From Klebsormidium nitens (lineage: Eukaryota; Plantae; Klebsormidiophyceae): DNA of 64,000 nt. The position numbers and the translations under genes are program-made. How positions within the stretch are numbered: the stretch's first letter is position 1; each line of letters starts with the position of its first letter. The DNA is taken from contig DF237095.1 in assembly GCA_000708835.1 (NCBI GenBank), positions 1 through 64,000 on the forward strand, written 5' to 3'. Shown in pieces: positions 1,920 to 55,189 of the stretch. Below the pieces are notes generated by a model that was not told the origin of the DNA, ran no database searches, and saw only the letters and a program-made list of their open reading frames with translations.

Positions 1920-4900
1920 TTAACGTTCATATATAATCCGATGCATCGGTGTAGAAGGCGTCCTCATCTTCATGTTTGGACTGCCACTATTTCCTTTGCG
2001 CCCAACAGCCTCGGAAGCTGCCCTGCTCTCAGCTGACAGCCAATCGCTCCCCTCCTTTGACCGCTCTCGCGAGGTTGACTTACTGGGCGGCAAAGCCATC
2101 GATGCCCGCAGCTTGTCCGTTACCGTCTTCAGGGATGGCGACCGCGCCTGCTGTTGTCTGGGCTGGTGGTCGCCCAAAGGCACCACCGGCGCTGGCCTCC
2201 GGAGAAACTCCCCGGACGTCCGCAAGAACTCCTGTGACGCCCGGAGGACGTCGCTAGCCTTTTTTGCGGACGATTGGGGCCGGACGGTAGATGACAAAGG
2301 CGCGGGCGTCGATGCGCGGAAGTCGGTGTTCAGCGTAAAGTTGCTGGCAGAAGGGCCTCCAAGCGAAAAGCGGTGCGATGTTTGGAGAGGCGTCGAAGCT
2401 TCGCTCGGAGATGGAGTGGGCGGAGCAAGAGCTCCGTTGCGGATGTCGAATTGCAGCCTGGATGGAGCGTAGCTGGTATGGGTTCTGATAATCAAAGCTT
2501 GGACTTCCTCGAGAAGACGGAGCAACATTTGTCTTCATTGAGGACTCTCGGGAGGGCGCTGCAAGCTTAGGAAGATCTGAAACTAAAGTACTGAATGCAC
2601 TCAAGTCGAAATTGACTCAGTCCGATGGTGACATCCTTAGATTTTGCGTAGCTGAATTCCCGTCTGCCCAACTGTTGCTTGCCGCTTCGCATCAACTTGT
2701 CACGCACCGGCCCCTTTTCACACCTTGACGGCAAGTCATCACCTGGCGCCAGCCGTAGGATTTGCGGCCTTACAGTGGGCGTCGGGAGAAGAGAGGCGCC
2801 AATCGCAAAGTCGCTCCTCTTCAAGCAAAATGGCCTGAGCCCAATTTAAACCTTAGACGTTCCGCCGAGCCCCCGTAGAAAGAATAACTAAAGTGGCGCC
2901 TCAAGTAACTAGCAATACAAACACCAGAGCGGAGGTCCTCCGAAATTGAGCCTCAAGCAACGCGGCGAAGCCCCTTCATAATGCAACTAGAGCGGCGTGA
3001 CGAGCGGCCTCACTTCTGGTAGCGCATGTTGACCTCGTAGAACGCGGTGGTAACCATCTGCTGCTCGCGCGCCGCCATCTCGCCCGCCTCCCGCCGCAGC
3101 TTCTCCGCCGTCTCTAGTTGCTGCTGCAGCGCGGCGTTTTCGTTCTTGAGCAGCGTCAGGTCGATGGCGGCCGCGCAGGACATGCGGCCTTCCACGTCCT
3201 TCAACCGCTGCTCTGCCGCGGAGAGGGCCTGGAAGAGAAAAGAGGGGCGAAGGTTTAGAATGAAGACCCTAAAATCCTATAATCCTAAAACTAGCATTGT
3301 CAATAGGGTTTGCTGTGCTGCCTTACGTGCGGAACCGAAAGACGTAGAAACTGAAATGGTGACACAGAACTGGCGGCCCTCCACGTCCTTCAACCGCTGC
3401 TCCGCTACAGAGAGGGCCTGAAGAAACAAAAAAGGGGGGGGAGTAAGCTCGTAGCGACGTAGTCTGGGTTTGCATTGCTGCTTTCGTTTTTAAGTGAAAG
3501 GATAGAATCTGACGGTCGTCCACGCCACGCCCTTGTGCTGAGGAAAGGCCCTGAGAAAGGAAGAAAGGGGGGCGCAAGCATATAAATTACGTGACATGGT
3601 TTGAGTCTGCTCTTCTGCCTACAGAGGTAAATTGAACGCGTGGAGTATGACGGCCTTCCACGTCTTTCAGTCGCTGTTCCGCTGCGGAGAGGGCCTGGAA
3701 ATGAAAAATAGGGGCGAAGGTTTGGGACTTCAGCGTTGTCAGGTGGGTTTGCTGTGGAATTCTGAAAGGCGTAGAAAACGAGATAGTCACACGGGACTGG
3801 CGACCGGATTGCGACCTTCCGCAACCATCAACCGCTGCTCTATCGCGGAAACTGGCGGAAAGACGAAACGGGGAGGAGAAGGTTCAGACACTCAGCAACG
3901 TCATTGTAATGTTCGCGGTGCTGCCTCCAGTGGCGAAATAAAGGGAGGGGAGTATGAAATGGTTAAATACTTTATAAACTCTGTACCTGGCAAGAGGTGA
4001 GAACGTTCTGAGTCGGTTTTAGATGACTTGTGGCAAGTGTGTTAAGCCGATCCTGCTCGAACTAGGAAGCAGTACCTTTGAAACAGAACTATTGACGTGG
4101 ATGGCCAGCAGAGCTTTGTACTGCGCCAAACAAAGTAGGTCTCTCTCTCCCTTCCTGGCTATACAGATGTCCAAAGCAGAGTGCGGCAAAGACGGATAGG
4201 AGAGCCGGGTCGACGCCAGCAACTTTGATGGACCTCAACGCAACCTCTTGCGCAACAGATGTGATCGGTTGGTCGAGGACCCACCTTCTGCTTCTCGTCC
4301 AGATCGGCCCGCAGTTTCTCAATATAGCCGCTGATCGAGGCCAGTAGCGACGTGCTGTTGCGGCCTTCATCTGCTGATTGCTCCATCTCTTCGGCCGCAA
4401 CTAGAGCGGCACCATCAGCCTGCACCAATGATAGACGATTTGCTAAGCATCTTATGCGTTTAACCTGATACAAAGGCCAAATGTTGAACGCCGCATCGGT
4501 CGAGGGGACACATTGAGACGTCAAAGCGCCGCAGATTCCGTGCGCGCCTGCACTTGGACATAATCTGTTTGACCGGCTCAAATCAGATAGACGATCGCTT
4601 GGAAGGTGGAAGCAAGCCATAACCTCCTGAACGGGAGCCTCGTAGCTGGATTTTGACCGAAACGAGGAGCTACGGAGGGCTTACAGAGGCATGCAAAAGC
4701 AGACTGAAGGCGCGTAAGCGCAGATTGAGTTTTGGGCGTGTTACCTCGTCCGCCGTCGCCGTGTCCTCTAGCAGGGCTGCGGCTCGATTAGGCGACCAGG
4801 GGGCAAGCTCTTGACTGTTAGAGGGGGGCAGCGAAGCGAGAGCGGCCGCCAGTTGACTGTGAATGGCGTCCAGCTGGAAGCAAGAAAAGGACAGGGTTGA

Positions 4901-7900
4901 ACAAAAGAGCAGGCTTGAGTGTCTAAGGAAAAGGCCTGAACGATTGAGTGGTTGAAAGGACGATTAGACAAGAAGCATGTAAGTGTAGAACAAGCAGTAC
5001 AGCAGAGATGTTGGGGCCAATTCATCCGCATGCAACGAAAAGCACTTGTACTTGAGGGCAGTGTTGACGAGTAGTATACGAAGAGCACGCTTTCAAAAAG
5101 GACGCCTTGATGCAATTGAAGACAACTTCTCCTTCGTCAGCGTTACGCGCCACTTCCGTGCTTTTGGGACGGATTCTACGCTCACCTCGCTCTGTAGAAC
5201 TAGAGCGGCGATCCTGTGCTTCTCCCCCGTCTCTTTCTCTCTGTCAGCGGTCCCCTGAAGCGCCTGCAACCGTTGGGCCATTTCTCGTAACTCTTCCCGC
5301 AGGCCGTCGGCCTCGTCGGACCGGGCACGGAGCTCAGTCCGAGACGCGTCCAGCGCAGCGACCACCTGCGCAGTACAAGAATCCTGTTATTGGGCAGCAG
5401 AGGGGCCGATCTGCTTAGTAACTGGACCTTTTTTACGCCCTGCAAAAGCTGACTTGATGAGAGCCGGGAGGTACAGCGACCAAGGGAGAAGGGAGAAAAC
5501 TGATGTAGCGTTGCAGGACTACCTGCGCAGACACAAATGCTGGCAGTCCGCTTGTGAAGCATTCGCGCAGTGCTTTCTCAGTGCCTGGACAGACGCTTGT
5601 ACCATCTTGCTGCTTCGCCTGCGAGAACAACGAGATTCACTTTCCTCGCAAGGGAAGTTATCACATCTCACATCGATCGCAAATGATGAAGCATTGAATG
5701 ATTTCACCGGCTTCCCACCTGCTCCATCTCGGCCGTTGCCCTTCCTAGATCCTCGCTGAAGTCCCCCCGCAGCCGATCATATTCAGACTGCACCGCTCGC
5801 AGCGCAGCCGCCCCTTCCTCCCCAACTTTCTTAACCTCCGCCCGCAAACCCTCCGCGATCTTCGACGCTTCCGCCAATTGGCCCTTGACAGCTGTCATCT
5901 CCTCAAGCGTTGCCCGCAACTCTTCCGCTTTCTTCTCCACCTCATCGGTAAGCGCGTCCCGTTCCTTGGCAAGCGCTTCCCGCTCCTCGATAGCGCCTCT
6001 CAAATCGCACTCCAACCGGCCCATGTCCTCTTCGCTCTTCTCGAGGCGTGCCTCCCATTCGGCTGTTGCCGCCCAGTGCTCCTCCAAAACTTTCTCCGAC
6101 GCCGCGCGGGCCTCTGCAGCCGTCCGTTCGCAAGTCGCCTCCAGCTCCCGCACCGCCTCGCGACCCCGCTCTAGTTCCTGAGTCACCCCCAGCATCTCTT
6201 CCCTCGCCCCCTCTAGTTGCCGACTTACTTCCTCGCACGCCGCATCCTTCTGTGCGAGGGCGTACCGGACCGTCTCCAACTCAACGCAAAGCGCCGCAGT
6301 CTCGTCTTTCCTAGTCTCCGCTTCCGTCCGCACACTTTCCAGCTCTGTCTGTACAGCATTCAACTCCGCTTTTATTTTCTGCAGCTTTTCAGTTTTCACG
6401 CTCAGTAATGTCTCCAGCTGCTCAAACGCGCTGACCTTCTTTTCCAGCGCAGCCCGCAGCTCCACCGCCTCTTCCTCCTGCCGCTGGAGCCGACTATTTA
6501 GCTCGCCCGCAATCTTGACCGCTGACTGGAGGCGCTCTTCCGCATCCTGCGCTTCTTGGTGGGCGAGTCCCAGCGTGTGCTTCAGAGAGGTGACCTCAGC
6601 ACGCGCCTGCCGGGCATCCGTTTGCGCCGCTGCTAGTTGCTCCGACAGGTTCTCGTATTCTTGCTGCTCGCTCGAGAGCTGGCTGCGGGCGTGGCTCAAC
6701 TCGCGGCGCACCTGCACATGAATCAAAACGGCCTTTCGCAATGCACCTCCAAAATGCAAATCTGCTTCGCTACACACAGTCTGCCTGATTTGCGCCTTTG
6801 AATATAAGATCACACAGAATTGACTGGACTTCCTTTCACGCACAGATTTGTTGTGCACAGTTCAAACATACGTCGATCAGGGGGCCACTCTTTTCCTCCG
6901 ACAATCCTCTTCTTAAAGCACACAGGGAGTACACAATGTCTCCCTCGCTCTTGCTAAGCCTCACGCTCTCTACACACTGCTCCCAAGGACAGGCGAAAGT
7001 ACTGCATTCGGACCCGCAGTGGTCAGAACAGATCACCCTTCTCCAAGCATTTCATGGTCAGATCAGCAGACCCACCTGTGCCTCCTCCACTTTCGCCTGG
7101 TCCAAATCCAGCTTCGCCTCGTCCGCCTCCTGCCGCGCCGCCGCGCATCTCCTCGCCCATTCCGTCGCCGCTTTCTGCGCCGTCTCTGCTTCCTCCGTCC
7201 TCTCTTTTGCCTCTTCCACCGCCCGGTCCCTTTCGGACGTGCGATCCGCCAGCTCCCGCTTCAACTTGTCCGCAGCCCTCTCGAGCGTCCGTGCCTGCTC
7301 CTGAGCCCGCTCTAGTTCCTGTTGGAGTGTGTCCGAAAAGAGCTTCCCCTGCTTGACGGCTGCTTCTAGAGACCCGAGTCTCGTCTCCGCCTCCTGGGCT
7401 TCCGCCGACAGCCTCGCCACGTCCGCCTGCCGCGACCGGAGCTCCGTTTCGAGGCGCGCTGCTTCCTCCGTTTTGCTTCGAAGACTCTCTTTCGCGGATG
7501 CCAGCTGCTCTTCGTTGGACGACAAGGCCTCTTGGAGAGTTTTGATGTCGACGGACTGCCGCTCTAACCGGCCGCGGAATCCGTCCAACTCCTCGCCCTT
7601 CCGCTGCAGCGTCACTTGGGCTCCGCTCAGCTCCCGCTCGAGGCCCTGTACGCGGGCGTTCTTCTCCAAAGTGCTGGTTTCGAGGGCCGACTTTGCCGCG
7701 AGCAGGGCCTCCCGTTCCGCTCTCAGCGCCTCCGCAGATGCGTCCATCTCTTCGAGGAGGGTCTTGACGTCTTCCAGGTTGGCCTCCATCTCGGTGACGA
7801 GCTGGTCCTTCTCAGCGAGCAGCGCATCCTGAAAAAACAGAGATTGGTGAGAACGATCGTAAAACGGAAAAGTACTGTAGGCAGCGATCGGCGAGTCCGC

Positions 7901-10900
7901 CTAGTACGATCGGCAATGATCGAATACCGAACGCCACGTACGGTGTTTGATGAGCGGGCGCCCAGACTTCCTTTTTCGTCATCCTTCTTCTGTTCATAAT
8001 CAGAAGAGTTCGTTTGCTGCTGGGGTTCATTGCCCGCCAGAAGTCTTGCTTCTACAAGTGGGTAAACAGGGCAACGGAAAAGGCCTATGGAGAGAAACTT
8101 CTTACGGCCAACAAAGCACAAGGAGCGCGCTTCCGCCTCACCTTGTCGGTCACAGCCGCCCTGCTATCCTCCAGCAGATTCGCCAGCTCAGCATTGCTGG
8201 CGACGAGCGCCTCGTTTTCGCTCTGGCTCTCCTTGAGCGACTCTTCAAGCTCGTTTTGCTTCTGCTCGTAGGCTCTTTCCTGGGAGCGCGAGTGAGCCTC
8301 CAAGTCAAACAGCTCGTGGGTCTTCACCTCGAGCTGGCCTTCCATGTCGACGACCTGACAGGGGAGGAGCGGTACATTGATTAGAGCGGACAGCTCTACC
8401 TTGGAAAACAGGGGGAAAATGCTGCATGGATTGTTAGTGTACGCCGGACTTTCATTTTGAGATCACCGGGACTGCGGAGAACAGATAAGAGACCTACCGC
8501 GGAAAACAAGGAATCAACACTTTTCAATGAGATCAAAGATCACTGAGAGAGAGGGCTTTGCGTTTGGAATGTTGGAATCGAAATTCTTCATGTATCAAAC
8601 CGTCCGTCCCTCTTGGGCCCTCGTACTTCTAGGAGCAAATCGTTAGGACGCAGTACCAAGGGAAGCAGACAAAGGCACCTTTCCAGATTTCAGACTGTGT
8701 CTACTGCATTAGCTAAGAAACTCCCCGGGTGTCCGCACCTTCAAGCGGATCAGCCGCATCTCCTCCTCGTTCTTGGAGTTGATCTCATTCAGCGCCCCCA
8801 CCATCCGCGAGAACTGCTCCAACTCATGCTCCATCTTCTCGATGCTGACGTCCCGCTCGTGCACCGTCACGTCCCGGGCCCCCAGCGCTGACGTCATCTC
8901 CGTGATCTGCACCTGCGCCGCTTCCAGCGCAGCCTCAGTTGCGCCCAGTTTCGCTCTAAGCTGGTCGCCCTTCCCGTTGGCCTCCTCCAACGATTCTTCC
9001 AGCATTGTAATCTTTGAGTCCTTCTCCTGAGACCGAGAAACTTCCGCCGCTAGTTCTTCCGCGAGCCTCTCCCCTTCCCCAACGCTGGCCGCCACCTCGG
9101 CCCCCAGCCGTTCCACCTCGGCCTGCGAGGCCGCAACTTTCTCCCGCTCTAGTTCCATCCGCTCCACCTGCCGCGTCAGCTCGCCCGTCAACCTGCCAAT
9201 GCGCGCCTCGCGTTCGCGCACCTCCTCCTCCGCAGCCTCAAGCTCTCGAGCAAGCACGTCCTTTTGTGCACAACTCTCCGCCAGGTCGACCCGCAGTTTC
9301 TGCGCCGTCTCACTCATCTCCACTAGCTGGCGGTTCCGCTGCTGGCCCTCGGTAACTGCGCGCTCCAACCCCGCCTGCAGTTCCGAAATGTACTTCTGGC
9401 CCTCGGTCCGTTTCCGCTCGCTCTCCTCGAGCTTGCCTTCCAATTCCGCCACCCGCACCAACCGAGCAGCGGATTCCGCCCTGCTTCCGTCCAAGTCTCT
9501 TTGCAAGGAGGAGAGGCGCTCCTCCAACGCCGCCCCTTCGGCCTCAGCGACACCTAACGCCGCCTCTAGTTCCTTGTGCATTCGTTTCTCCGTTTCGAGC
9601 TCTGCAACTAGGCTGCTAATCCCTTCTCGAGTGGACCTCAGGTGACCACCCAAGTTCGACACGCTGTTTTCTAGACTGGCTACATGCTTTCTGCTGCGGT
9701 CCAACTCAGCGCTAGTATCTGCGAGCTCCGCTGCTGTTTCTTCCAACTCAGCCTGTATTTCTCGCAGGCGGGCCTCGGTCTCCGTCAACTCCCTTTCCAA
9801 GGCCGCTTTGTCGCCGGTCAAATCCGCTCCAAACTGTTCGGAACGAGCCAGCTCCGCAGCAAGTCTTAGGACTTCCTCCTCCACATTCCCCAGTCGTCGC
9901 TCAAGCCCCTCCTTTTCTGCTCGAAGCGACGCCCCCTCCTCAGTCGACACCCTCAACCGCTGGCTTTCAGAATTCAGGGCCTGAGCCAACTGGTGGTTCC
10001 GCTCGTTCAGCTGGCCAACCTCGGCCTGCAGGGCAGCCACTGACGCGCTGCCACGTGTCACCTCCTGACGGGTCGCCTTCAGTTCCCCCTGGACGCCCTG
10101 CATCTCGCGCTCGGCGTCCACCAGCTGCCGTTCCCGCCGTCCGAGCATCTCCCGCAACGCAGACTCTTGCTCCGATACCTCCTCTAGTTGCACCCTCACA
10201 GCGACCGCTGCAATCCGCTCCTTTTCCAACGCCTCTTCCAGCTTCTCACACTGGGAGGCAAGATCCGTGCTGCGAGTCTGCTCCGCTGCCAGGCCAGACT
10301 GAAGCTTCTCTAGCGCAGTCTTCGTCCCCTGCAACTCCTGGCAGGTTTCCTCAAGCGCGGCGCTTAGAGCGCCGACCTGTGCCCCCAGACGCTGGGCTTC
10401 TTGATCCCGCTCCCGGAGTTCGCCTCCTAACCGTCCGATCTCGCCAACCTTCTCTTCCAGTTCCCGCATCTTCGCCCGCAGCTCTTCTTCCCTCGTTCCA
10501 ATCGTTGCCCTGCTGCTCACCAGCAAACCTTCCAATTGGTCCTCGACAGTCTCCAGTTCCTTCTTCAACGCTGTGATCGCCGTACTCTTCTCCACCCCCT
10601 CGCGTCGCTCCTCCTCGAGCCGCCCCTCCAGCTGCGCAGCCCGCGTGCGCGCCTCGATGACGTCGCGCGTCGCCTGACCGATCTCCTGCGTCGCCTCCTC
10701 GAACAGCGCTTTCGTCCGCACAAGCGTCTCGTTCAGCCGCGCCGCTTCTTCCTTCATCCCCTCCAGCTCGCTCTCGGCCTCCTCTTTCTCGGTCCGCAGG
10801 CCCCACAGCTCCTCTTTCATCTCGTCCCCTTCCCTAACCTTCGCCGTCAAGTCCCTCCGGAGCGCAATCATCGCCTGCTGCAGCCTCTCCCCCTCCTCTC

Positions 10901-13900
10901 TCAATTGCTCCACCTCAGAAACCAATTCCGCCTCCTTCCGTCCCGCTTCCGACTCCACTCTCGCGTGCTGCGCCTTGAGACTGTCCCACTCCGCCCGCAA
11001 GCTCGTCAGTTCCTTTCTCGACCTTTCGCCCTCCTCGGCGATCCCCTCCGCCTCCCGAACCAGTTGCGCTTTCTCTGCGGCCACTGCTTCCATGGTCCGA
11101 GTGAAGCCGGCGAGCTCCTCGTCGAGAGTCTGCTGCACGCGGACGCGAGTCGCGTGCTCTCGGGATGCGTCGCTGACGGCGTTCTGCAGCTCGTCCGACA
11201 GCCTGAAGACGACGAGCGCAATGGTCAGAAAAAGAAGTGAAGGTTTTGAAGCTGGGGCGTTCGAGGAAGTTTCTTTCAAATCTTTAAACAGCAGCAGGGC
11301 GAAAGTGTACAGAGGTGTGAAGACACGATGGACAAACGTCGAACGACTAAGAAAGTCTAAACTTGCAGCACCCCATCCTTCCCAGCGGTTTCTATGTCCT
11401 CTCCTGATTTTGCTATAATTCCTCATTCTCGAATTGACGTAGGCCCCTCCAATTTGCCAGGAGATGTGCGCTCGCGGTCATCCCTGTCTTTCTCTAACAG
11501 CAGCAGAAGTATCCGCCCTGACTCACCGAGCCTTCTCAACGTTTGCTTTCTCCAGCTCCTCTTTGAGCTCCTCGCACCGCTCCTTGCCGGCCCTGACACT
11601 GGCCTCCGCAGCCGCCTTAGCGACTTCAGCGGTCATGGCCCTCTCATTCCAGCGCTCTTTCTCACGCAGCATGCTGTTAATCTCCAGCATTCGCTCGTTT
11701 GCATCACTGCGCAGCCGGTCGCTCTCACTGCGCAGCCGCTCAATCTCCTCCTGGATTGAGCAGGGGTTGGATTGTCAGCGATCTCAGCTGATGGCAGAAA
11801 CACAGGCTCAAAGACAGAGAAAAGATCACTCAACAGAATGAGCACTTCTTGCTTCGACGATACAAACCTAGATATCACTTAGAAAATTGAGACTGGATCC
11901 TTGTCAACTGTTCCAAAGACGCAGGTGTGGAGAATACAAGTATCACAGTTGATGCCCCCAAGCTTCAGAAGCTGAGGCAATCCGGAAGAAGGCGGCAAAA
12001 CTCTTTGCTTCACTCTTACCATGAGTCGTGTCTCTCTTTCACCCCGGCCTTCTGCGCCCAACAGCAGTCGCTCCCGTAAGACAAGGATCTCTGCCCCCAG
12101 CCGCAGCTCTTCTGCTTTCCCCAGCTCTACCATGCCCTTGAGGCGGCTGTTCTCCGCTTCCAGATTGTCCCGCAGCGAAAGCTGCGCTGATTCGGCATCA
12201 TAAAGCTGGGCCTGCAAGGCAGGAGAGGAGATTACGCCCAATTTGATTTCGAGCGTCCTACCTTTACTGCCAATTCAAAGCCTACTACAAGTAGCTCAAC
12301 CACAAACGACACAAATTCAACGTTTGTGGAACTGTAGTGGTCTTGGCTCCAACGGCACCCTAAGCTTGCCTGTCATCAGAGTTGGTTCACAAAAGCGCGA
12401 CGCAAAGTGCATCAGAGTGGGTCAAAGGATGGAGGCAGAAAGACTCTCACCTGCAAACGGTCCTTCTCGTTCAAAGCATTCTGAAGCTTCGACTGCAAAC
12501 CGGAAAATGCGTCTCTCAGATTCTCGTGCTCATGTGCGCTTTTCGCCTGATCCTCCTGTAACTCTCTGTTGCACTGTTGAAGCTCCTGGACTTCAGCCGC
12601 CCTTGCTTCCAGCTTCAGCCACAGGGCCGCCATTTGCGCCTCCTTGCTTTTCGTGGCTTCCAGGAGAGAGGCCTTCTCAGCCTTCAGAGTAACGAAAACA
12701 GATGTTATGCAGTTCATAAAAAGGCAACAGGTTATGTAATGATGACTGCGAGTCAAAGAATGGAAGCGAATGATGATGCAAAACTAAAGGTGCGCAAATT
12801 GGATCTTTTCTGCTTCAATGAGAAAAATTCACTGTGGTGAGAGCACCTCACCTGCAGACTAGAGCTCTGTTCCTGAGCCATACTCAGTTGCTCCCTGACC
12901 CGGGCCTGTTCATATGGGTCCACCGATGTCTGTACATCCAACAAGGGGATTGGTAAGCTTCAGCACTTTGGGATTAGTCAGCTGGGTAGCCAAAGATAAT
13001 CTGCCACAGCACCAGAGAAGCTACCTCCAAGTTTGCTCACAGCAAACCTTTTTGCGGACTCTCCGCAAAGTCTGCCTTCCGGACCGCACAAAAGGTCTCG
13101 CCTTTTTGACTTTGGAGCTTACCCAGTGCACAGGGCCTTCTCCTGCTTCCTTCAGAACTTCCTCGTAAGCTCGGTACAATCTCAACACCGTTCTCTGCTT
13201 GACAAAAGGAGAGCGCCTGTCAGATGGATAAAATCATTCCCTTGGATGAAGTGCAAACTGAGGCACCACGGTACAGGAACACAGCAACACTGCAGTCTAG
13301 CAGAGTTCTTGAGCAAGCACCTGGAAAAGAACATCTTCTAAATGCAGACTGACCTGAGAGGTTCGCTTAAGAGCGAGAACGCCATCAAGATATTGTCCCT
13401 TCTTGGGCCCTGTGAGGGCAGCAAACAATAGCTGCAAAAAAGGACTGGAGTCAGGGCCGGCAAGCAGGCATAGGAGGGGACAGCAGACATGCCTCTATCC
13501 AGACAATACGTAACATTTGCAACATCTGGTTGAACATTGATTACATAGGAGAGCCACAGTCTCCGAAATACGGATCCTTTCAGCTCGTGACTTTTATGCG
13601 ATCCTTACCCTCTGCACAAGCCTGAGCAAGGCGCTGTAGTCGCCTGCGGCTGCAGCTTCAACGTCAGGACCTACTGCAGCAGCCTCTGTTGGGGCGTGCA
13701 ACTCCTACACAGTGCAAGCACCCGCATCAGGCTGTTGACGCAAGGGTGCAGTGACATGCCAATCATCCTTGGATAGTGTATTCCCCGTCTGCTCATGCTA
13801 TATCATAAAGGCACTGCCTTTGTTACTAGAAAGGGACCTGTTAGCACCCGCAGTGACATGTTGGACACAAGATCACTGCAGCTCAAGGAGCCATGAGAGT

Positions 13901-14416
13901 CACTCAGTGTATCTGCCGTGTATTTATGCTGATCACCAAGAAACTGGCTTGTCTGTTCTCTTTTTGCCAAAAAGAGAGAACATCCGCCATGTCAAATACT
14001 CGACGAGCAACCAAGTTCTGACCTGTTCATAGTGTGCTGCTAGTATACCAATCAGTTCCAGCTTTGGGTCAGCAACCAGGCTCCTAGGTGTGCTGGGCAG
14101 AATGTCTCGGGCAGCCTGCGAGAGGACAACCTGCATATCGAGGGTGCGCACACGCGTCAATGCCAGCCGAGCTAGCTTGGAAGGAAGTACCTTTCCACAG
14201 CGTCTTTCACTCAGAGCAAATAAGAAACGGACCTTCAGTACGTCAAACAGCGGGCAAGGCGTTGCTGGTCCGGGCACCAACTCATGCTTCCACAGTACTT
14301 GTACTCACCCCGTCTCTGAGTCCCTCAAACGATCGCACCATCGGTCCATCTCTGACAACTGTCTGGAGCCAGTCCAAGACTCCCTCAATGTGCTCTTCGG
14401 TGATATCGCCCTGCAT
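1920..14416 (-). CDS. Hook-family-like protein: N-terminal Hook/calponin-homology-like domain, very long coiled coil, Hook-like C-terminal helix and Ser/Arg-rich tail (~2,268 aa, 18 exons)
   Basis: Hand-spliced exons (minus strand): 14309-14416, 14023-14130, 13609-13704, 13354-13431, 13123-13194, 12852-12929, 12451-12681, 12020-12211, 11527-11750, 8739-11202, 8142-8354, 7076-7828, 5719-6711, 5186-5365, 4745-4873, 4285-4419, 3014-3228, 1920-2457. All are GT-AG and phase-consistent; total 6,807 nt, open. The N-terminus MQGDITEEHIEGVLDWLQTVVRDGPMVRSFEGLRDG-VVLSQAARDILP...LAAHYEQ-ELHAPTEAAAVGPDVEAAAAGDYSALLRLVQR-LLFAALTGPKKGQYLDGVLALKRTSQ follows the Hook N-terminal pattern (L..WL.T, DGV.L..., YY...L...PD......D...L.RL..L.L..A...KK..Y...I..L....Q). 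The C-terminal REQQMVTTAFYEV resembles the Hook C-terminal E..L...AWY helix. The middle is E/A/L/R-rich heptads. The start codon is uncertain (in-frame ATGs upstream to 14617) and minor exons may be missed. Confidence 0.8.
3229..3860 (-). repeat. Intronic tandem degenerate copies of the acceptor and first ~45 nt of the 3014-3228 exon
   Basis: The real exon edge ccttccacgtccttcaaccgctgctctgccgcggagagggcctggaag (3188-3235) recurs at about 3375-3422, 3508-3555, 3653-3700 and 3812-3860, spaced ~130-190 bp apart. Confidence 0.85.
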
Positions 14417-15523
14417 CTTGCTTCCCGGTAAGGTAGGGGTTCGTTCATTCGCACTCGCACTTGCACTCGAACGGGTGGGGCGTGCATCCTTTTTGTCAGA
14501 GACATCAAAGAGTCTTCTTATCCGCGACCGCATCTCTTGGTGAGGGTTCGGATCAGCGCGGACGACACTGCGAGCGCGATCCATGCTGCTACTCTTTGAA
14601 ACACACAGAAGCTTCACTATTAATGACTAGGTCTTGAAGCATTAGCATCCAGGCTGTTGAGCATGTATGCTCTCTCAAGAAGGAGGCTATATCTCTGCAA
14701 CCGAGAGACCAGCTCCAGATCCTGTCACATGCGTGACACCACAACAAAGCACCCCATTATTGAGTGGTCAAGAAGCGCTTGACGCTTATGATCTGCACAC
14801 CTGGAGCTTTCTTGCATTGCCACTGACATGCTGCTGATTCCCCCACGGCTCTCAACTCATGACACAACCAGTGAGACTTCAACCCTTGTGATCAATACAG
14901 TCGGCTTGCACCAGTGAGAGCTTGCAGCAATCGATCAAAGCCCATGGCAGCGGCAGCTGCGTCTGGCTGCGTCCCTTGCTAAGTTGCTTGCCAATGCAAA
15001 GCGTCCAGAGCTTGCGTGAGCCCTGACTCTGAGTCTGAGCCTGAGGCATTCACGCTCATTTGTCACTGAGTCAGCATGAGTCTGACTCTCCGAGACTGAC
15101 CATACAATGCAATGCAATACTTTGAACATTTACGCGGGAATTTGATTCAGCTGCACGGAATGAAGGCGGACGGAAGGACAGAGGGTTAAGGCTCTGGTTT
15201 AGAAATGTGGGTTAGTAATCGACGTCGAAAAGTCTCCAGTTTTCAATTTTGCATCGGGGTACGTTTACACTGACAGCTTCAACGGAAAACCCTCACCGCC
15301 ACTAACTGTACTCTGTTCCGCCGCACCCCTCAGCGGAGTCCGTTTAGACTCCGTTCCGTTTAGACTCCGTTCCAAGTCTCGACTCTCGAGCCAGCTGACC
15401 ATAGCCTTAGCCTTAGGTACAGAAGCACAATTTTGTCTCTCAGGCTGCTGCCGTCGGCGGCGTTGGCCGCCTTCTTTGTTCAGGAGATAGGATAGCTCAG
15501 GAAAGATTCCCCCCCCTGGCAAA

Positions 15524-17149: not shown

Positions 17150-20100
17150 TCACGATCGGGGTACAGCTTGGGCGCTCAATTGAGCGGCAGTGGCCAACGG
17201 GTTCATGCTGTAGCTAAAAGCTAACTCGTAGAGATCCGAGAGATTTTGCTGACAGCTGTGAAGCGCCTTCCGAAGATGCCTGCGTGAGAGAGAGGTGTTT
17301 CAGGCCTGCAAGTGACGGTGTTCATTCCAACATAGTGAAACGCAGAAATTTCTCAAATACGAAGCGGAACAGAGAACCACCATCATTTGAATCTGCACAC
17401 CCTATGTCTGGCACATCAACAACATAAGATAATCATGTTGGCTCGTCAGCTGAACTTCCTTGACGTGTCAGCAGGTCTGCCAGAAAGATCAACATGAACC
17501 GCTGACAAAATCGCCGCAGAATCAACGACGAACTGACCACTGTCCCCAAACTGACGTGAGGTACCCAAGCTGCTCCTACTTATTCCATAGGAACGCGACA
17601 ACCTCATCGCGCGAGACCGAAGCCCACCCCTTGAAAACTTTTGACGACTTAGCCTGACAGCCTCACCTTTTAAGTGTGGCCCGCTCCTTGATAACTGCGT
17701 AAAGGAACAACCCCGCCGCGAGCACCGTTAGAAGAGCCCGCCCACCCCCGTCTTCCGTCACTTGGCGCCACTTTTGGTGTCCGTTCTGCCAGGCCCTTCG
17801 CCACCAGCCCTGAGCCAAGGCCGCCCAGTATAGCAGCCACGACAGGAAGCCGCTGCGCGGACCCGCAGATGATAGCCGCAGATCTCGACTGCCATTCCGC
17901 TCCGAAGGGTTGGGCGGCGGATCGAACACGCCTCTTTGATCTACGCTGCTTGACGGCTCGGGAAGGGCGCTGTCTCGGTTAGAGGTTTCTGGAGGATCGA
18001 TGAACGGTGACGATGAAGGTACGGAGGTGGCTTTGGCAGGGCAATCGGCAGAAGGAGCAGGGCTTGGGAGGTGTCCGTTTGTCTTTTGGTCTGGGGCCTC
18101 GACGGTGCGTTTTGAAGCAGAGTTCGAGCGCAGCTGTCGCCTTCTCACTTTCTTGAGCAGCAACTGCACGGACGATAGAGCTTCTCTAACAACCTCTTCC
18201 CTTGTCATCTGGACTCGAGGCTTCGTAATTGGGGGCTTCACAATAGCTTCGAAGAGCAGTGGATGCTGCCAACCCAATCATGTTCAGCAACGAGAAACGG
18301 GCCCGTCAAAAGTAGGGTATGTTACCTGAGACATTTTACAAAGGTGCAGCAAAAGCATCAAAAGGGCCACAAGTATCCATGGGCAGAAAACAGAACAGGG
18401 AAACACTGGAGAACTAAACAGCCGAGGCCGAGAAAGGAGCCTTGAAGGCACTCACAGAGGACGAATCAAACGTCCTCTGAAACTTTTCACTTCGTTTGAA
18501 GCGCAGGATTACGGGGTTTTCGTAACCATCTGTTGTGCGGAGATTTCTCGCACGTGAGGCTCTTGTCTAAGGCACTCACCCTGATCGTTGCCCCGTCCAG
18601 CCATCCGGACTGCTCGTGCAACCAGTCTTCCGCCTGCTGAGGAGTGTTACGGTGTTCGCAGAGCAGGTCCAGGGTGTATAAGCCCGCCAGAGAGCACCCG
18701 GCCCGCCGATCGAGCTCCTTGCCTCGTAACTTCAGATACTCCGCAACAGCCTCTTCTGCACCGTCTTTGTCGCCAGCTTTAATCCGAAGACATGACCTGC
18801 AAGCCAGAAAATCTAGACTGAGTGCAAACATATATACAGGCCATACGACTTAATGAGGACTATAAAAAGCGCAAATGAAAAAACTGAATATGAGTTCTCG
18901 TGTTGTTACAAAAAGGACTGCGGGTCAAAAGATTTGGGCAAGAAACAATCTATCCCATGCAGTGGAGTCTCTTCCATATGGGCTTTCCGTATGCGCAGCA
19001 GAAAGAAACTGCCAATGGACTGCTAACCATGATATTCAACGGGGCAGGCTGCTGGAGACAATGACCAAAAACAAGCTTACCATGTGAGAAACACCTCGGG
19101 GGGTATGGCGTCCAGCTTTGAGAAGGCCTTGAGGAACTGACCCTCCAGCTCGTCATGCCTGAGAAGAGAAGCACCAGAAAAAGCGTCAGCGAATTACGTC
19201 AATGTGAGCACACCAGCAAAGAAAAAGCTTAGCAAGCTCAGAGGCGCTGAGGTCAAGGGCACCTCTGAGTTGCTAATACATGGTCAAGCACGACGAGGCA
19301 TCAAAAGCAACCACTCGGGCGGCAGGGCGGTATGTTATTTACGGTTTGTCCAAGAGGGTTGAAAGATCTGTCCATCTGTCATTTTGTAGCGGGGTGTTTT
19401 TTTTTTGTTTTTTCTTTTATTTTAAATTAAGGTGCGCAGTCACCGCAATTTTGCCATCGCTGTTTCCGAAACCGTTGATTCAAAACGTCAATGCAGACAC
19501 AATCTGATCAGCCCCTACTCCCGACCAAGATCGAGTAGGTGACAATCAATCAAACTTGCTCGGTTGATGGACACTTAGCCAGACACTGTAAAGATCATTC
19601 ACTTTGATCCTTCCTGTACCAGGATAGCACTCAAAACCTTTGACCAGAGAAAAACGACTGTCAACGTAAAGTGGGACTCCTACCTTCTCCTTTCGTGCTG
19701 TGCTTGCAAGAGGACCATGGCGGACGACTCCACAATATCATTGAGATCTGCCCCGGCAGACTTCCCAGAGGTCCTCAGTGACGAAGCCTTCAGAAGCACG
19801 GCGGCAGCGGCGGCCTGCGCTTTGGAGAAGGCGCCAGACAACAGGTGCCTGGGAAGAGAAAGTATGGTCAACATTATAGTGGATCATTTTCCTCACCTCC
19901 GCCAATTGACGTCGATTACTTGGAGTGATGAGACTTCCAAGTGAACGCTTGAGAAAGAGTTGTGTGAGTGCCGCCGAATGAGCATGCCTGGCAGACCTAA
20001 GTTGGGGCAGGGAGGGTGGAAATTGAGGAGGGCGCAAGTTTTGATAATGAAATGCAGGTTATGACTCGCTGTCATTTAGAAATCAGCCAAACAAAGACAG

Positions 20101-25100: not shown

Positions 25101-28100
25101 AACATCGGATGCAATGAGGTGCGGCGTCCTTCTGGCGTTCTGCCACATCTACAACGAGACGGCGAAGTGGGGCGCTGGTCGCTCTTTTGACCTGTAGGCA
25201 AAAGGTAACGTGGAAGTGGGAGACGTGCTACAGAGCGGGTTTGTTCTGCAGTCGCCAAAGCAATATATTGCTTGAGTTGTGCTAGATCCACAAAGGAACT
25301 GGGAGAGGAACGTGAGGCATTCCGTCTGCGGAAAAACGGTGAATTCCAGTTGGATTCGCTTGGGGGATGGCACCCTCTTTACCTAGGACTGAAGAGAGAC
25401 TTCGCCAGAGCGGAGACCGCAATCTGTTCTCGTCCTTCAACGTCACGCGGACTCCATGCATCTCTTTCTGCAGACTTCATCGCCTTTTTCCTGCTTACGG
25501 CACCATTCTTCTCCTCTCCAGATCAGCGGCCTGCTCTGGGCTGAGATCACGGGCGTTCCGCTAGGTCTGCGCAAGAGCCGCTCCTCTAACACTAAGCGGG
25601 GCGCCGCTGACGTCAATCTAACACGCCTCTTCTTCTTTGCAGACGTCATCCCCGTCTCCCTTCAGATTAGCGACCTGCTCTGGGCTGAGATCACGGGCGT
25701 TCCGCTAGGTCTGCGCAGGAGCCGCTCTTCTAACACTAAGCGCGGCGCCGCTGACATGATTCTAACACGCCTCTTCTTCTTTGCTGACGTCATCCCCGTC
25801 TCCCTTCAGATTAGCGACCTGCTCTGCGCCGAGATCTACGGGCGCCCCGCTGCGCCTGCGCGAGACCCGCTCCTCCGGCACTGTGCCCCGGCGCCGCTGA
25901 CGTCGATATAACGCCTTCTTCCAACCGCCCTTCCTTGCTGACGTCACACCTATTCCCCTCCAGATAAGCGACCTTCTGTGCGCCAAGATCACGGGCGCCC
26001 CTCTGCGCCTGCGCGAGACCCGCTCCTTCGGCACTGTGCCCCGGCGCCGCTGACGTCGATATGACGCCTTCTTCCACCCGCCCTTCCTTGCTGACGTCAC
26101 ACCTGTTCCCCTTCAGATAAGCGATCTTCTCTGCGGCGAGATCACGGGCGCCCCGTTGCGCCTGCGCGAGACCCGCTCCTCGGAAACAGTGCGCGGCGCG
26201 GCGTGTGACGTGGAGGGGCTGACGTGGCTCACGTGCGGCAGCCCCACCGAGCTGCTGCAGCACTTCAACCGGGGCAAGCAGGGGCTGCACTACGCGGAGA
26301 CGAAGCTCAACCGGCACTCGTCGCGCGCGCATGCGGTGTTGCAGATCCGGGTGAGCGGGCAATCGTTTAGAAATTTGCGTTGTCACGATTTCAGGGTTGG
26401 GGCTTTTGAGATTTTGGGGCTTTAGGTGCGAGAGTCCAACCGGGGCAAGGAGGGGCTGCACTATGCGGAGACCAAGCTCGGCTGGCATCCTTCGCGCGCG
26501 CATGCTGTATTGTAGATCCGGGTGAGCGGGCAACCGCTTAATGATTTCGCAGATTCACGGTTCTACGTTTGGTGCTTTTGAGATTTTGGGGCTTTTGATG
26601 CGAGAGTTCAACCGGGGGAAGCAGGGGCTACACTACGTGGAGATCAAGCTCAACCGGCACTCCCCGCGTGCACATGCGGTCTTGCAGATTCGGCTGAGCG
26701 GGCCTCCTTTTGGATTTTTGACATTCTGGGATCCTTGGGCGTTTGGGGTCGGAGGATTCTGAGGCTTTGGGTACCGATGCTCAACCGGCACTTCGAGTCG
26801 CGTGAGCACGCGATGCTGCAGATTCCAGTAAGCGAGCAATAGACTTAGAGTTTGGGACTTCCGGGCTTCGAATGTGAGGATATGAAACTCTGTTTGGAAA
26901 TTCACGGGCGGACAAAGGGGCTGCCACATGCAGAGACGAAAGCAAAACCGGCACTCGTCGCGCACCGCACGCGATATTGCAAATTCGGGTGAGCGGACGT
27001 TTCGGAACCCCACGTTCTGCTCAACGCGAGCTTACGTCATTACAGAGTAGTCCATTAACTGAAATGAGATAAATATCCCAGGGCATGTTCCGTTCACCAA
27101 ACGGTCTTCCGTCCGGTCTGCAGGTCGTGCGGAAAGCCGCGGTCGAGGCGATCGGTGGGGAGCTCTCGTCGCAGCGTCAGCGAGTTGACGGGAAGGTGAG
27201 ACGCAAAGCACGTTTGCAAGTCGTTTTACAATGAAAGTGTTAAGAAAACAGTTGACTTGGTTCGAGCACTTCTGTTGCCAATGCTTGCAGTCTACCACAG
27301 TCGAAGTCTTCTTCTATAGAGACCGTTTCAAAGATAGCCGACTTGGTCTCCGATCACTCAGGATGCCATGTGCTGGCAATGTGCTACCAGGCAAGAGCCC
27401 GAAGTCACGTGAGGGCCGTAAACATAACTTCAGCGGAGGAACGAAGCGGAGCTCTCTCTTTATTCTCACTTGAGGTGCGTGGTGCGCACTAGAGTATTCT
27501 CTTTGAGAGTGTACTTAGGAACCAAAAACCGGCTTCTGCTCTATTACACGCGGTTATACTCAACACGTTTCGCGTGCCCATCCATGTAGCTAGCTTAACT
27601 CCTCCTTGGTCGAGTGCGAGTTGTGTACTATAGGTGCTTTGATGGACATGGTTGGCAGCTTGCTCAGACCCCCATGTCAAAACGCACTTGACCTTAACCG
27701 CCCCGAAGACTCATCACACCCCCATTACTTTTGAACGTAAATGCAACCCCCTACCGCAGGGGGGAGTGCGGGGTGCGCAGCGCGCAGATGCTGGTGGTGG
27801 ACATGGCGGGCAGCTTTTCAAGCGCCCCCGGTCAGAACCCACTCACTCACTCCCCCCCAAGCCAGATTATNNNNNNNNNNNNNNNNNNNNNNNNNNNNNN
27901 NNNNNNNNNNNNNNNNNNNNNNNNNNNNNNNNNNNNNNNNNNNNNNNNNNNNNNNNNNNNNNNNNNNNNNNNNNNNNNNNNNNNNNNNNNNNNNNNNNNN
28001 NNNNNNNNNNNNNNNNNNNNNNNNNNNNNNNNNNNNNNNNNNNNNNNNNNNNNNNNNNNNNNNNNNNNNNNNNNNNNNNNNNNNNNNNNNNNNNNNNNNN

Positions 28101-52300: not shown

Positions 52301-55189
52301 TCCTCCCATCTCACGTGAAAAGTGCCCGCATCTCCTATGCCTCTCGACATTACCCGTCTCACTAAACAGCTGATCCGTCGCATGCCTTTGCTAGCCTAGT
52401 AGTACGCAAGGGCTTTGAATAGAAGCGTCCGACCTTTCCACCCGCAGCGGTTCAGTGTCCCAGTGATACCCAGGACGTCACCTGTGACGTCATCCCCGCT
52501 CCAGCTGTGCCTCCCCCCGTCCGAACCTTGTACCTACTCTGTTGCCCCGGCTGAGTCTGCCCGAGCTTTCCGCTAACTACACGGGGTCCCCAGTGTGTGG
52601 ATTACGGGCTTCGAGGTTGGTGTGATAATCTCGATTTTGCATTGGGTTGAGTTCCTCGAGCTGAAACAAATGAGAATCCTAAACCCCAAGTCAACGTGCT
52701 CCGCACCCTTACCCATGTTCAACCCCTGAAGAAGGATTGCTTCTTTTGTGTCCTCCCGGGTCCCAATCTGCCACCAGTTACGCCCCTAAAAGTCAGAAAG
52801 TAGGAAGCGTATCGCAGCGGATTATTCAGAATATGAGTTCTCATCCGTGATAATCTGTTAAAAGTACTAAAGTAAAGCAAAACCCGTCTCTCCAGCACAC
52901 ACACAGTACTCATCACTCTGACTGACATGCCTATGGCATCGCAGAGTTGTCTCCTGCATGTTGAACGGTGTTCATTAAGCACCTTAGAACCTATCCAACC
53001 GAATGAGACCGGCTGTATTTTATTCACGCTAGCCAGGCGCTACCCATGCTGAATCGGACATTAGATGAAACCAAAGAGTCAGATCATTGTATTGAGTTGC
53101 TTTCAAATCATGACTGACAATGACGTATGAATGGAATTGGAACAAGGATAGAGCAGCCACCATGTCAATCTCTGTTACTAAAGTCGTCAGTCGACTCGCT
53201 TGTCGATCTCTGGCAAACAAGTGCGAGTTCTTCGACATGCTCGCTTTCAACTAAGATTTACGCCCGTCTCTGATAAACCTTTTGCAGTGGCCGTACCTTT
53301 GCCGACACCCCCTCTGCCTTCTGGCGTAGTGACTCCCTCTTCAACTCCGACGTCAGGTACGGTCCAATTTATAGAACCGGCCCACTACAAGTCGCCTATT
53401 CGAAGGATTACATCCTGAAGAACCTGTTAATCACCTCCTCAAGCGCTTCGTAAACGGTCAAGCACCCCAGCCGGACTCTACCCAACTTCAGTGAGAATAC
53501 ATTCATCTGCGAAGCCGTTCTACTATCGTGATCAATCCGATAAAACTTCACAAGGGCCCGACTCAGAGCCTTGGATTCCACCAGATCCAAAAATGTGCCG
53601 AGCGGCTATGATTCTTCGCCAACAGCGACACTGAATCTGCTCGTTTGCAGCCCCGTTACCCATAACTGGGCCCGCCCGAACCGCGTGGTCAACCTGGTCA
53701 ACAGCTGCTTCTCGCCGGTTGGAATCACGTTAGCGAGCAACACAACAAACGGCGATTTCTGGCGCATCTTCCAGCCCAACGGAGCCGCGCTCGCGGCCGC
53801 GCCCGCGACGTTCAACCTACCGCCCGGCGGCGCGCAAAACAATCTGCTGCTGATCAACACTTCGCCGTTTCCTTCGGTGGGTCGATTGCTTCAAGTTGTT
53901 CAATCGCGCTTTTCCTGGCCGTTAATATATTCGTTCCGGATCCGAAGTTATGGCTTCGACGCCGGTAGCTCGATTGCTTAAGTTCGAGTCATCGCTTTGC
54001 TGGCGGTGTATCAAGCTAGTCAATATTCTGAACTTGTAACTTCGACAATGTCGCGTACTTCTTGTCCTTCCGCTTGGATGCAGCCACAGATCCGAGTTTA
54101 CTTGGTTTGATTGCTTTTGATATGTCCGAGGTGGCTTTGCATGTCTCCTATCAAGCGCTTTTGAGTCCTTTTGGAGAGATCAGACGAGTTAGAGGCCTCC
54201 GTTTTGGAAGAAACTTTTGATGTATTTCTTCCCCTCTGCAACCTATCTATTGGGCTCTCGAAACTCAGATCTAGATATACTTCAACCTTCCACTTCTGTA
54301 GCCGTCGCACGGATGCAAAAGACGGCTCTTCTACCGCAAAAGCACGCTTTGTCGATCAAGAATGTATGATGCGATGCAATCAGATTTTCTGTAAGTCTAC
54401 CTGACTGTTCATTATTAGTTGCTCATAACTCAAACAAGAACAACGTGTGGACCGCGCCCTTCTCTCTTTTTGCCTTCATCGCTGATACTTCACTCATACT
54501 CTCCTTAGCTTGCAGAGAAATCCGCGCACGGGGGGTATTCTCGTTACCCCCCTTCCGCCCACGCTCGTTCCGCCCAGTCCGCCCGGCGTGGACGGACTCT
54601 TCATCAGCAGCACCACCGACCCGTTCGCGGCAAGCACCGTCACCCTCCCGGGCGCACCCGGGGTATTCACATTCGCCTCGCTGCAGAGCGCCAACCCCAG
54701 TGTAACTGCGGCCCCGGTCGTCATTGCTGTGACGATCTTTTGTCCCCGCTTGTTGCCCGTGAACACTCCCCCAGTCACTACTCCACCGGCTGGGGGGGTG
54801 GTAACTTTGCCTGCGAAGACCCCCCCGGTCACTACGCCGCCGGTTGGGGGGGTGGTGACTCCACCGGTGAGCACCCCCCCGATTGTCATTCCCCCGGCCA
54901 CAACCACGACTCCTCCAATCATCACCCCCCCGGCTATAACGACCCCGGTCACGGCCCCCCCCGTCACAACTACCCTGGCCATCACTCCCCCGGCCACCCT
55001 TACTCCCCCCCCGATCGGACCGGTTTTCCCGACCCCTAGCCTGCCTATACCGTTGACAGGAGGCGGTGCAGCTGGTTTACCGCTTTTCTATCCGGGGGTC
55101 CCCGAGGCCCCGCCTCTTGCGCAGGGCCCGAAGCTAGTGCCGTTGCCATCCACACCGCCCCCGAAGAGCCCTTCCCCGTCCCCCGACCG

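Follow-up and report, generated by a model that had tools for sequence, protein, structure and literature searches.

Hook proteins are defined by their role for cytoplasmic dynein-1. Their Hook domain consists of a seven-helix calponin-homology (CH) fold and an extended helix H, and their conserved C-terminal region binds FTS and FHIP. Hook-type heads are also found in larger animal proteins. CCDC88A, CCDC88B, and CCDC88C (Girdin, Gipie, and Daple; ∼1,500 to 2,000 residues) have an N-terminal Hook-type domain, a very long coiled coil, and C-terminal G-protein-binding (G-alpha) and PDZ-binding modules. NuMA (∼2,100 residues), which works with dynein-1, has a Hook-like N-terminal domain, a ∼1,500-residue coiled coil, and a basic, disordered, microtubule-binding C terminus. 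In Hook3, the named positions are W19, L123, I136, I139, M142, Q147, M151, and I154, with helix H spanning residues 132 to 158 (PMC4970328). Of these, I136, I139, M142, Q147, and I154 are the helix H contacts to the dynein light intermediate chain, and Q147 is universally conserved and essential for light-intermediate-chain binding (PMC4970328). Toxoplasma HOOK shows that a Hook protein outside animals and fungi can work with lineage-specific partners (PMC10629828). A preliminary description of the DNA studied here stated that land plants lack cytoplasmic dynein-1, which agrees with the published loss of the dynein-1 heavy chain when the Viridiplantae originated, in a data set that included Klebsormidium flaccidum (PMC5100056).

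The window analyzed, a stretch of 64,000 nt, is the beginning of scaffold DF237095.1 of Klebsormidium nitens, a streptophyte green alga, in keeping with the green-lineage host assumed beforehand. On the minus strand of DF237095.1, positions 1923 to 14584 contain a gene of 18 exons and 6,972 coding bases that encodes about 2,323 residues in the order 56-residue N-terminal extension, five-exon helical head, rod, C-terminal helical segment, and basic disordered tail. A small helical head with a long last helix, a coiled coil, and a conserved C-terminal segment, in this order, are shared with the Hook proteins (human HOOK1-3, Aspergillus HookA, Ustilago Hok1, and Toxoplasma HOOK), and the algal protein also resembles them in that HOOK_N clusters are nearest to its exon 1 and that helix H positions, including the conserved Gln, are matched. 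Unlike the Hook proteins, which have ∼700 residues, the algal protein is ∼3.3-fold as long, close to the threefold excess first described; it carries the N-terminal extension and the long basic disordered tail, its head, measured from the Trp to the Leu anchor, is ∼14 residues shorter than that of Hook3, its exons lack a Pfam HOOK_N or HOOK match, and its host lineage is reported to be without dynein-1. Among Hook-domain proteins, CCDC88A/B/C are closest by size, and the size and order of head and rod fit, but the algal rod has no sequence relation to theirs and the algal tail gave no Pfam family match. By description the protein is also like NuMA in its giant size, its candidate Hook-like head, its long coiled coil, and its basic disordered C terminus, but in the exon-wise search the algal exons matched no NuMA chain in the PDB. 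The multi-exon gene reported earlier is present, on the minus strand, with its five short 5' exons, coiled-coil body, and C-terminal helical exon, as well as the tail:

14309..14584, minus strand: exon 1, 92 codons; ATG at 14582-14584; the 56-residue extension and the first 36 head residues; donor GT conserved
14023..14130, minus strand: exon 2, 36 codons, head; 83% amino acid identity over the full length in the relative; donor CAG|GT strong and conserved
13609..13704, minus strand: exon 3, 32 codons, head; acceptor tgtgtag|GAG, phase 0; 100% amino acid identity
13354..13431, minus strand: exon 4, 26 codons; closes the globular core and opens the long last helix, a candidate counterpart of Hook helix H; all residues the same in the relative, dN = 0
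13123..13194, minus strand: exon 5, 24 codons; remainder of the long helix; 88% identity, dN/dS 0.11
12852..12929, minus strand: exon 6, 26 codons; linker leading into the rod
12451..12681, minus strand: exon 7, 77 codons; start of the rod (exons 7 to 14 without proline)
12020..12211, minus strand: exon 8, 64 codons; coiled coil, very strongly conserved; 95% amino acid identity at dS 0.61, dN/dS 0.04
11527..11750, minus strand: exon 9, 224 nt; coiled coil, very strongly conserved; 95% amino acid identity, dN/dS 0.07
8739..11202, minus strand: exon 10, 2,464 nt, 821 codons; main rod exon; length equal in the relative
8142..8354, minus strand: exon 11, 71 codons; rod
7076..7828, minus strand: exon 12, 251 codons; rod
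5719..6711, minus strand: exon 13, 331 codons; rod, lowest conservation of the gene; 75% amino acid identity, dN/dS 0.31
5186..5365, minus strand: exon 14, 60 codons; end of the proline-free rod; 92% identity
4745..4873, minus strand: exon 14b, 43 codons; linker with proline; good splice signals; 91% identity, dN/dS 0.08
4285..4419, minus strand: exon 15, 45 codons; conserved C-terminal helical segment
3365..3874, minus strand: the 5' edge of exon 16, with its acceptor, repeated as three decaying copies within intron 15; 79%, 74%, and 67% identity
3014..3228, minus strand: exon 16, 215 nt; the "Hook-like C-terminal helix" of the preliminary description; 92% identity, dN/dS 0.13
1923..2457, minus strand: exon 17, 177 codons and stop; tail; conservation starts at acceptor 2457; stop site the same in the relative

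The gene model is based on genomic DNA of two close algae, K. nitens and one relative, whose ortholog, carried by Logan contig SRR23617307_479293, is syntenic. All exons are present on that contig in the same order, with 75 to 100% amino acid identity. Exon length is identical in 16 of the 18 exons and intron length differs in all introns, and DNA identity is 86% in exons versus 55% in introns, in this as in every conservation figure given here between two closely related species. All 17 exon junctions are GT-AG with consistent phases and a frame without stops; splice sites are conserved at 17 of 17 introns, and the reading frame is intact in both algae. For the whole gene, dN/dS was 0.22 at a dS of 0.42, with regional values of 0.06 to 0.15 over residues 100 to 600, 0.10 to 0.19 over the last ∼400 residues (0.08 to 0.15 in exons 14b to 16), and 0.2 to 0.57 in the rod. 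Exons 3 and 4 have a dN of 0 between the two algae, and the first ∼230 residues of exon 10 are nearly invariant, with the remainder looser. The gene structure of the Klebsormidium gene, its conservation, purifying selection on it, its rod, and its domain layout are demonstrated by these data and those on the rod below, and the syntenic locus validates the gene model.

The comparison also fixed several gene boundaries. Conservation between the species starts exactly at ATG 14584, 56 codons before the start previously placed at ATG 14416, which is instead where the head begins. The added codons contain an in-frame 12-nt indel relative to the related alga and encode 56 basic, Ser/Arg/Pro-rich residues. 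At the 3' end, acceptors 2532 and 2484 were dropped for the last exon in favor of 2457, where between-species conservation starts. The first 30 nt of exon 3 differ from the relative at one site, which is synonymous; instead of donor 14023 and acceptor 13704, the true junction of exons 2 and 3 may be another in-frame pair, formed by donor 14049 and either acceptor 13673 or acceptor 13682. A 40-nt "microexon" at 13943-13904 that had been proposed because its translation resembled a Hook motif was rejected because it sits in a 129-nt insertion that is found in K. nitens and absent from the relative. Intron 15 is 1,056 nt long in K. nitens versus 348 nt in the relative, and the three exon 16 edge copies within it are noncoding intron filler.

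The rod, encoded by exons 7 to 14, consists of 1,749 residues with zero prolines, so that the ∼1,900-residue coiled coil originally described was roughly right. Its heptad signal is far over that of shuffled sequences in exons 10, 12, 13, and 14, and heptads cover 47 to 78% of exons 10, 12, and 13 versus ∼10 to 15% in shuffles. If coiled throughout, the rod would be ∼260 nm long. A central coiled coil after the head is thus present, as the Hook family requires, but is much longer than in Hook. Pfam searches with the rod exons returned generic coiled-coil families only. No internal repeats, a sign of recent expansion, were found in the rod, and its seven L[FA]xE "Spindly-like" motifs are about the number expected by chance. 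An 818-residue rod-exon query in a word search and in exhaustive phmmer gave weak, generic coiled-coil matches, none with a Hook domain, and two metagenome scans with alignments of exon 8 and exon 10 detected no relatives. The lack of matches in the protein searches with the rod does not indicate that homologs are absent, because the relative's own rod ORF products of 838, 286, and 365 residues are missing from the protein collection. The ORF-style gene calls of the relative have no Pfam family, in line with the expectation that an ORF-based view would show only an anonymous protein.

Downstream of the rod, the C-terminal helix that had been called Hook-like is indeed part of a conserved helical segment. 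The attribution to Hook did not gain support from database searches: exon 16 gave only generic coiled-coil matches in Pfam and the PDB, and the conserved exons 14b to 16 had no Hook match in the exon-wise searches of either. These exons may resemble the Hook C terminus. The tail (exon 17) is basic (pI 11.1), proline rich, and disordered, with 34% Ser/Thr/Pro, and matched no Pfam family.

The N-terminal domain is split over five exons, as first described, with corrected boundaries as listed above, and the question for the head is whether it is a Hook domain. Exon-by-exon Pfam searches at E ≤ 10 returned no HOOK_N (PF19047), HOOK (PF05622), or CH match, and exon-by-exon PDB searches, including two-species profiles, matched no Hook, NuMA, or Girdin chain; these blanks have low power because the head exons are only 24 to 36 residues long. 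In the ESM Atlas, the 36-residue head part of exon 1 had as its rank 1 match a "HOOK domain-containing protein" (PF19047) with a score of 0.84, followed by CH/HOOK_N at rank 2 (0.80) and CH at rank 5 (0.77), and its ten best named matches all fall within one family or clan. One third of shuffled proteins reach 0.8 in this tool, whose own line is 0.9, and we treat the 0.84 match as a lead only because it lies below that line and has low recognition value. Exon 2 gave no usable match in the Atlas.

A second line of evidence comes from the long last helix. Exons 4 and 5 carry L, L, V, L, Q, L, and Y at spacings of +13, +16, +19, +24, +28, and +31 from the first L, and this series lines up at identical spacing with Hook3 L123, I136, I139, M142, Q147, M151, and I154; exon 4 supplies L, L, V, L, and Q, and exon 5 supplies L and Y at the M151 and I154 positions. 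Exon 1 contains a Trp (compare Hook3 W19), and this Trp and the seven Hook3-like positions are invariant between the two algae. The pattern, for which the L123 anchor and the residue classes were picked after the match had been seen, occurs elsewhere at 0 of 1,541 rod positions and 0 of 45,179 six-frame positions in the window. The broader alignment of the algal head to Hook3 is one that we presume. Homology of the head to the Hook domain is plausible on these sequence grounds, and the ∼154-residue, all-helical head is most likely a divergent domain of the Hook/calponin-homology type.

On balance, we favor the reading that this is a single functional K. nitens gene for a long, homodimer-type coiled-coil protein of ∼2,323 residues whose head is most likely of a divergent Hook/CH type. 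The protein would begin with a short basic extension and a ∼154-residue head ending in a long amphipathic helix, continue with a coiled coil of ∼450 residues under very strong conservation and a looser spacer rod that extends the proline-free helix to ∼1,750 residues, and end in the conserved C-terminal helical segment and the basic disordered tail. Tight ends and a looser middle in constraint fit a tether or adaptor in which the two ends bind different partners and the rod sets the distance. The head would dock a partner helix much as the dynein light intermediate chain is docked by Hook, although the partner would not be dynein-1, and the tail would bind cargo, membrane, or microtubules. The protein may act as a long tether or as an adaptor for another motor. 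More tentatively, it could be a true Hook-family protein, kept and enlarged threefold in a lineage without dynein-1 and probably without dynactin, whose helix-docking groove in the Hook domain serves another partner. That partner might be, for instance, the light intermediate chain of dynein-2, a minus-end kinesin, or a protein that is not a motor.

It is possible, though we doubt it, that the protein is a generic long coiled-coil tether of the golgin, rootlet, basal-body, or spindle-matrix type with a helical head unrelated to Hook and that its likeness to Hook reflects chance or convergence of amphipathic helices. The exon-wise Pfam and PDB searches, all without a Hook or CH match, would be expected of such a protein, as would the absence of an Atlas match for exon 2 and an exon 1 score close to the 0.8 attained by one in three shuffled proteins, and a presumed Hook likeness had already yielded one false exon, the 40-nt "microexon." However, the top family for exon 1, among millions of clusters, was the family proposed beforehand, seven published Hook3 positions including the conserved Gln recur at identical spacing and nowhere else in the window, and constraint on the head is very strong, with no amino acid replacement in exons 3 and 4.

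The same features might be read as those of a conventional Hook that serves cytoplasmic dynein-1 and dynactin as an activating adaptor, in which case Klebsormidium must still possess them. A Hook-like head is followed by several hundred highly conserved coiled-coil residues, approximately the length that lies along dynactin, and a Gln is found where Hook3 has Q147, a residue essential for binding the light intermediate chain (PMC4970328). [quoted passage not shown] We give almost no credence to a decaying or nonfunctional locus or to a head and rod that are two genes wrongly joined: frames are intact in both species, exon lengths and splice sites are conserved, phases agree, dN/dS is 0.22, and head and rod are separated by introns of just 170 to 193 nt, which leave no room for a gene boundary.

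Regardless of its relation to Hook, the gene encodes a well-supported ∼260-nm rod protein in a model streptophyte alga, one that ORF-style gene calls split into anonymous pieces. The 154-residue head is a concrete test object for the partner question. If a head of the Hook type is maintained by very strong purifying selection in an alga whose lineage lost dynein-1, then either it has an unrecognized other partner or streptophyte algae retained some of the dynein-1 toolkit, and either outcome would bear on how plants replaced dynein-based transport. If the protein is a true member of the Hook family, Hook adaptors would have a dynein-1-independent function, which may be ancestral.

Reading the minus strand in three frames, with AG and GT sites listed systematically, gave a phase-consistent model of a giant Hook-like coiled-coil gene (14584-1923, minus strand) that, after correction, has 18 exons and a coding length of 6,972 nt (~2,323 residues). 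Every junction is GT-AG, the phases agree, and there are zero stop codons. The encoded protein comprises a head, a rod, a C-terminal helical region, and a tail.

Exons of the Hook-like gene (window coordinates)
14584-14309, minus: exon 1 (head), start ATG at 14584
14130-14023, minus: exon 2 (head)
13704-13609, minus: exon 3 (head), beginning at 13704 set by comparison with the related alga
13431-13354, minus: exon 4 (head)
13194-13123, minus: exon 5 (head)
12681 to 5186, minus: rod, exon 7 to exon 14, one exon being 2,464 nt
minus: exons 14b, 15, and 16, C-terminal helical region
2457-1923, minus: exon 17 (tail), beginning at 2457 set by comparison with the related alga

The neighboring ORF at 17663-18277, used as a word-search query, retrieved a 70%-identical ORF product on a 37.4-kb genomic contig from a related alga (Logan assembly of run SRR23617307). 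This contig carries the kinesin, then the tail-anchored neighbor, then the Hook-like gene. Exon-by-exon tblastn recovered all exons in the relative, each over its entire length and with their order kept, at 75 to 100% amino acid identity. All 17 introns are GT-AG at homologous positions, and exon length is identical in 16 of the 18 exons, the remaining two carrying in-frame indels (12 and 9 nt). Intron lengths differ in all cases, and DNA identity is 86% in exons versus 55% in introns. Across the gene, dN/dS is 0.22 at a dS of 0.42 (Nei-Gojobori, two algae). On the basis of the conserved exons, splice sites, and lengths and this dN/dS, we conclude that the gene is real, single, and under purifying selection. 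The preliminary description was right to place a multi-exon gene here in a green-plant-lineage genome (Klebsormidium nitens), and the 18 GT-AG-bounded exons and the relative's syntenic copy refine that gene. Its start codon was replaced, by comparison with the relative, with the ATG at 14584, 56 codons upstream of the ATG in the preliminary description.

A 40-nt "microexon" in intron 2 was dropped from the model as missing from the relative. This microexon-like but unconserved segment, in frame and flanked by AG and GT, lies within a 129-nt insertion (window ~13824-13952) that is found only in K. nitens and is without counterpart in the related alga. Intron 15 is 1,056 nt in K. nitens versus 348 nt in the relative. 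Three further copies of the acceptor and first ~50 nt of exon 16 lie upstream (window 3176-3874; 79%, 74%, and 67% identity), spaced 160 to 280 nt apart.

Other genes and ORFs in the window
17663 to ~20000, minus: tail-anchored protein gene whose N-terminal part is helical, with synteny kept in the related alga (contig segment L002, 1-10513)
22100-37151, plus: kinesin of 1,080 residues (PF00225 and PF16796), syntenic in the same segment
45288-47996: 902-residue ORF, 99% identical to a Klebsormidium nitens GTPase-activating protein whose gene has matching coordinates on scaffold DF237095.1 (assembly GCA_000708835.1), which identifies the window as the first 64 kb of this scaffold

At 25456-26533, ORFs on both strands consist of about three tandem copies of a ~45-residue unit, probably a tandem repeat or mobile-element remnant. 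Long Pro/Thr/Ala/Val/Gly-rich repetitive ORFs with extensin-like low complexity occupy both strands at 54494-56567 and 63541-63984, interrupted by assembly gaps (N runs near 27.9-28.8 kb and 55.6-56.0 kb).

The rod (exons 7 to 14) has 1,749 residues and zero prolines. Under a strict heptad criterion, coverage was 47 to 78% in exons 10, 12, and 13 versus ~10 to 15% in shuffles. Pfam matches in the rod were to generic coiled-coil families only, and a search for internal repeats found none. At ~0.15 nm per residue, its predicted length is ~260 nm. The rod is acidic, whereas the tail is basic (pI 11.1; Ser/Thr/Pro, 34%). Constraint is uneven: dN/dS is 0.06 to 0.15 over residues 100 to 600 (head and first coiled coil), 0.2 to 0.57 in the rod, and 0.10 to 0.19 over the last ~400 residues, with zero amino acid changes in exons 3 and 4 at a dS of 0.3 to 0.45. 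Such a pattern is that of a rod acting as a spacer between two functional ends.

A word search and exhaustive phmmer with a rod exon returned nothing better than E = 1.5e-5, and metagenome scans were blank. The relative's 838-residue rod ORF product (80% identical) is in the gene-position index and outside the searched protein collection. The gene's long coiled-coil ORF products (related-alga DNA L003, 10001-12517, 13485-14345, and 14583-15680; window 8712-11426) are all in that index only; the short exon 1 ORF product of the same related-alga contig is inside the collection. Protein-search blanks for rod ORFs are therefore unreliable, and the protein and metagenome blanks do not show the gene to be an orphan or unannotated.

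The closest known kinds of protein are Hook, the Hook-related CCDC88 proteins, and NuMA, the likeness being one of architecture. Exon-wise Pfam and PDB searches, two-species profiles included, gave no match to Hook, CH, NuMA, or Girdin; with queries as short as these exons (24 to 36 residues), the blank excludes little more than a close Hook ortholog. When exon 1 (36 residues) was run by itself through the ESM Atlas feature search, the top rank went to a cluster named "HOOK domain-containing protein" (PF19047; 0.84), rank 2 to a CH/HOOK_N cluster (0.80), and rank 5 to a CH cluster, scores under 0.9 being leads by the tool's rating. The best 10 named matches all fell within one family or clan, and the top family was the one already proposed beforehand. 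Exon 2 retrieved nothing there. In a wider alignment, the head and exons 15 and 16 may be collinear with human HOOK3; this is a lead only, and the false microexon indicates that such leads can mislead.

The Hook domain is a seven-helix CH fold followed by helix H (132 to 158), with conserved W19 and L123, universally conserved Q147, and LIC-binding residues I136, I139, M142, and I154 (Schroeder and Vale, PMC4970328). Counting along the exon translations, the algal head has a Trp in exon 1 and, from the Leu at exon 4 position 2, L, V, L, Q, L, and Y at +13, +16, +19, +24, +28, and +31, the spacings of Hook3 I136, I139, M142, Q147, M151, and I154. The Trp, the exon 4 Leu, and the helix H-matching residues are invariant between the two algae. 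The class-level pattern had 0 matches in 1,541 rod positions and 0 in 45,179 six-frame window positions, with classes set post hoc; because they were fixed once the match had been seen, the apparent match to Hook3 is supportive, not decisive. The Hook-like interpretation in the preliminary description is partly supported, with the exon 1 ESM Atlas result and the helix H spacing in its favor. The head is probably homologous to the Hook/CH clan; the chances that the protein belongs to the Hook family proper appear about even.

Loss of the dynein-1 heavy chain at the origin of Viridiplantae was reported from a data set that includes Klebsormidium (Kollmar 2016, PMC5100056). The Hook of Toxoplasma has FTS and parasite-specific proteins as its partners (PMC10629828), which implies that the Hook family is old and its partners flexible. 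Beyond the observed layout and selection pattern, we infer partners for both head and tail. The Hook-like head, together with the conserved coiled coil next to it, would provide the docking site for a partner that is not dynein-1, and the conserved C-terminal region and basic tail may bind cargo, membrane, or microtubules. The gene product is most likely a long dimeric tether or adaptor.
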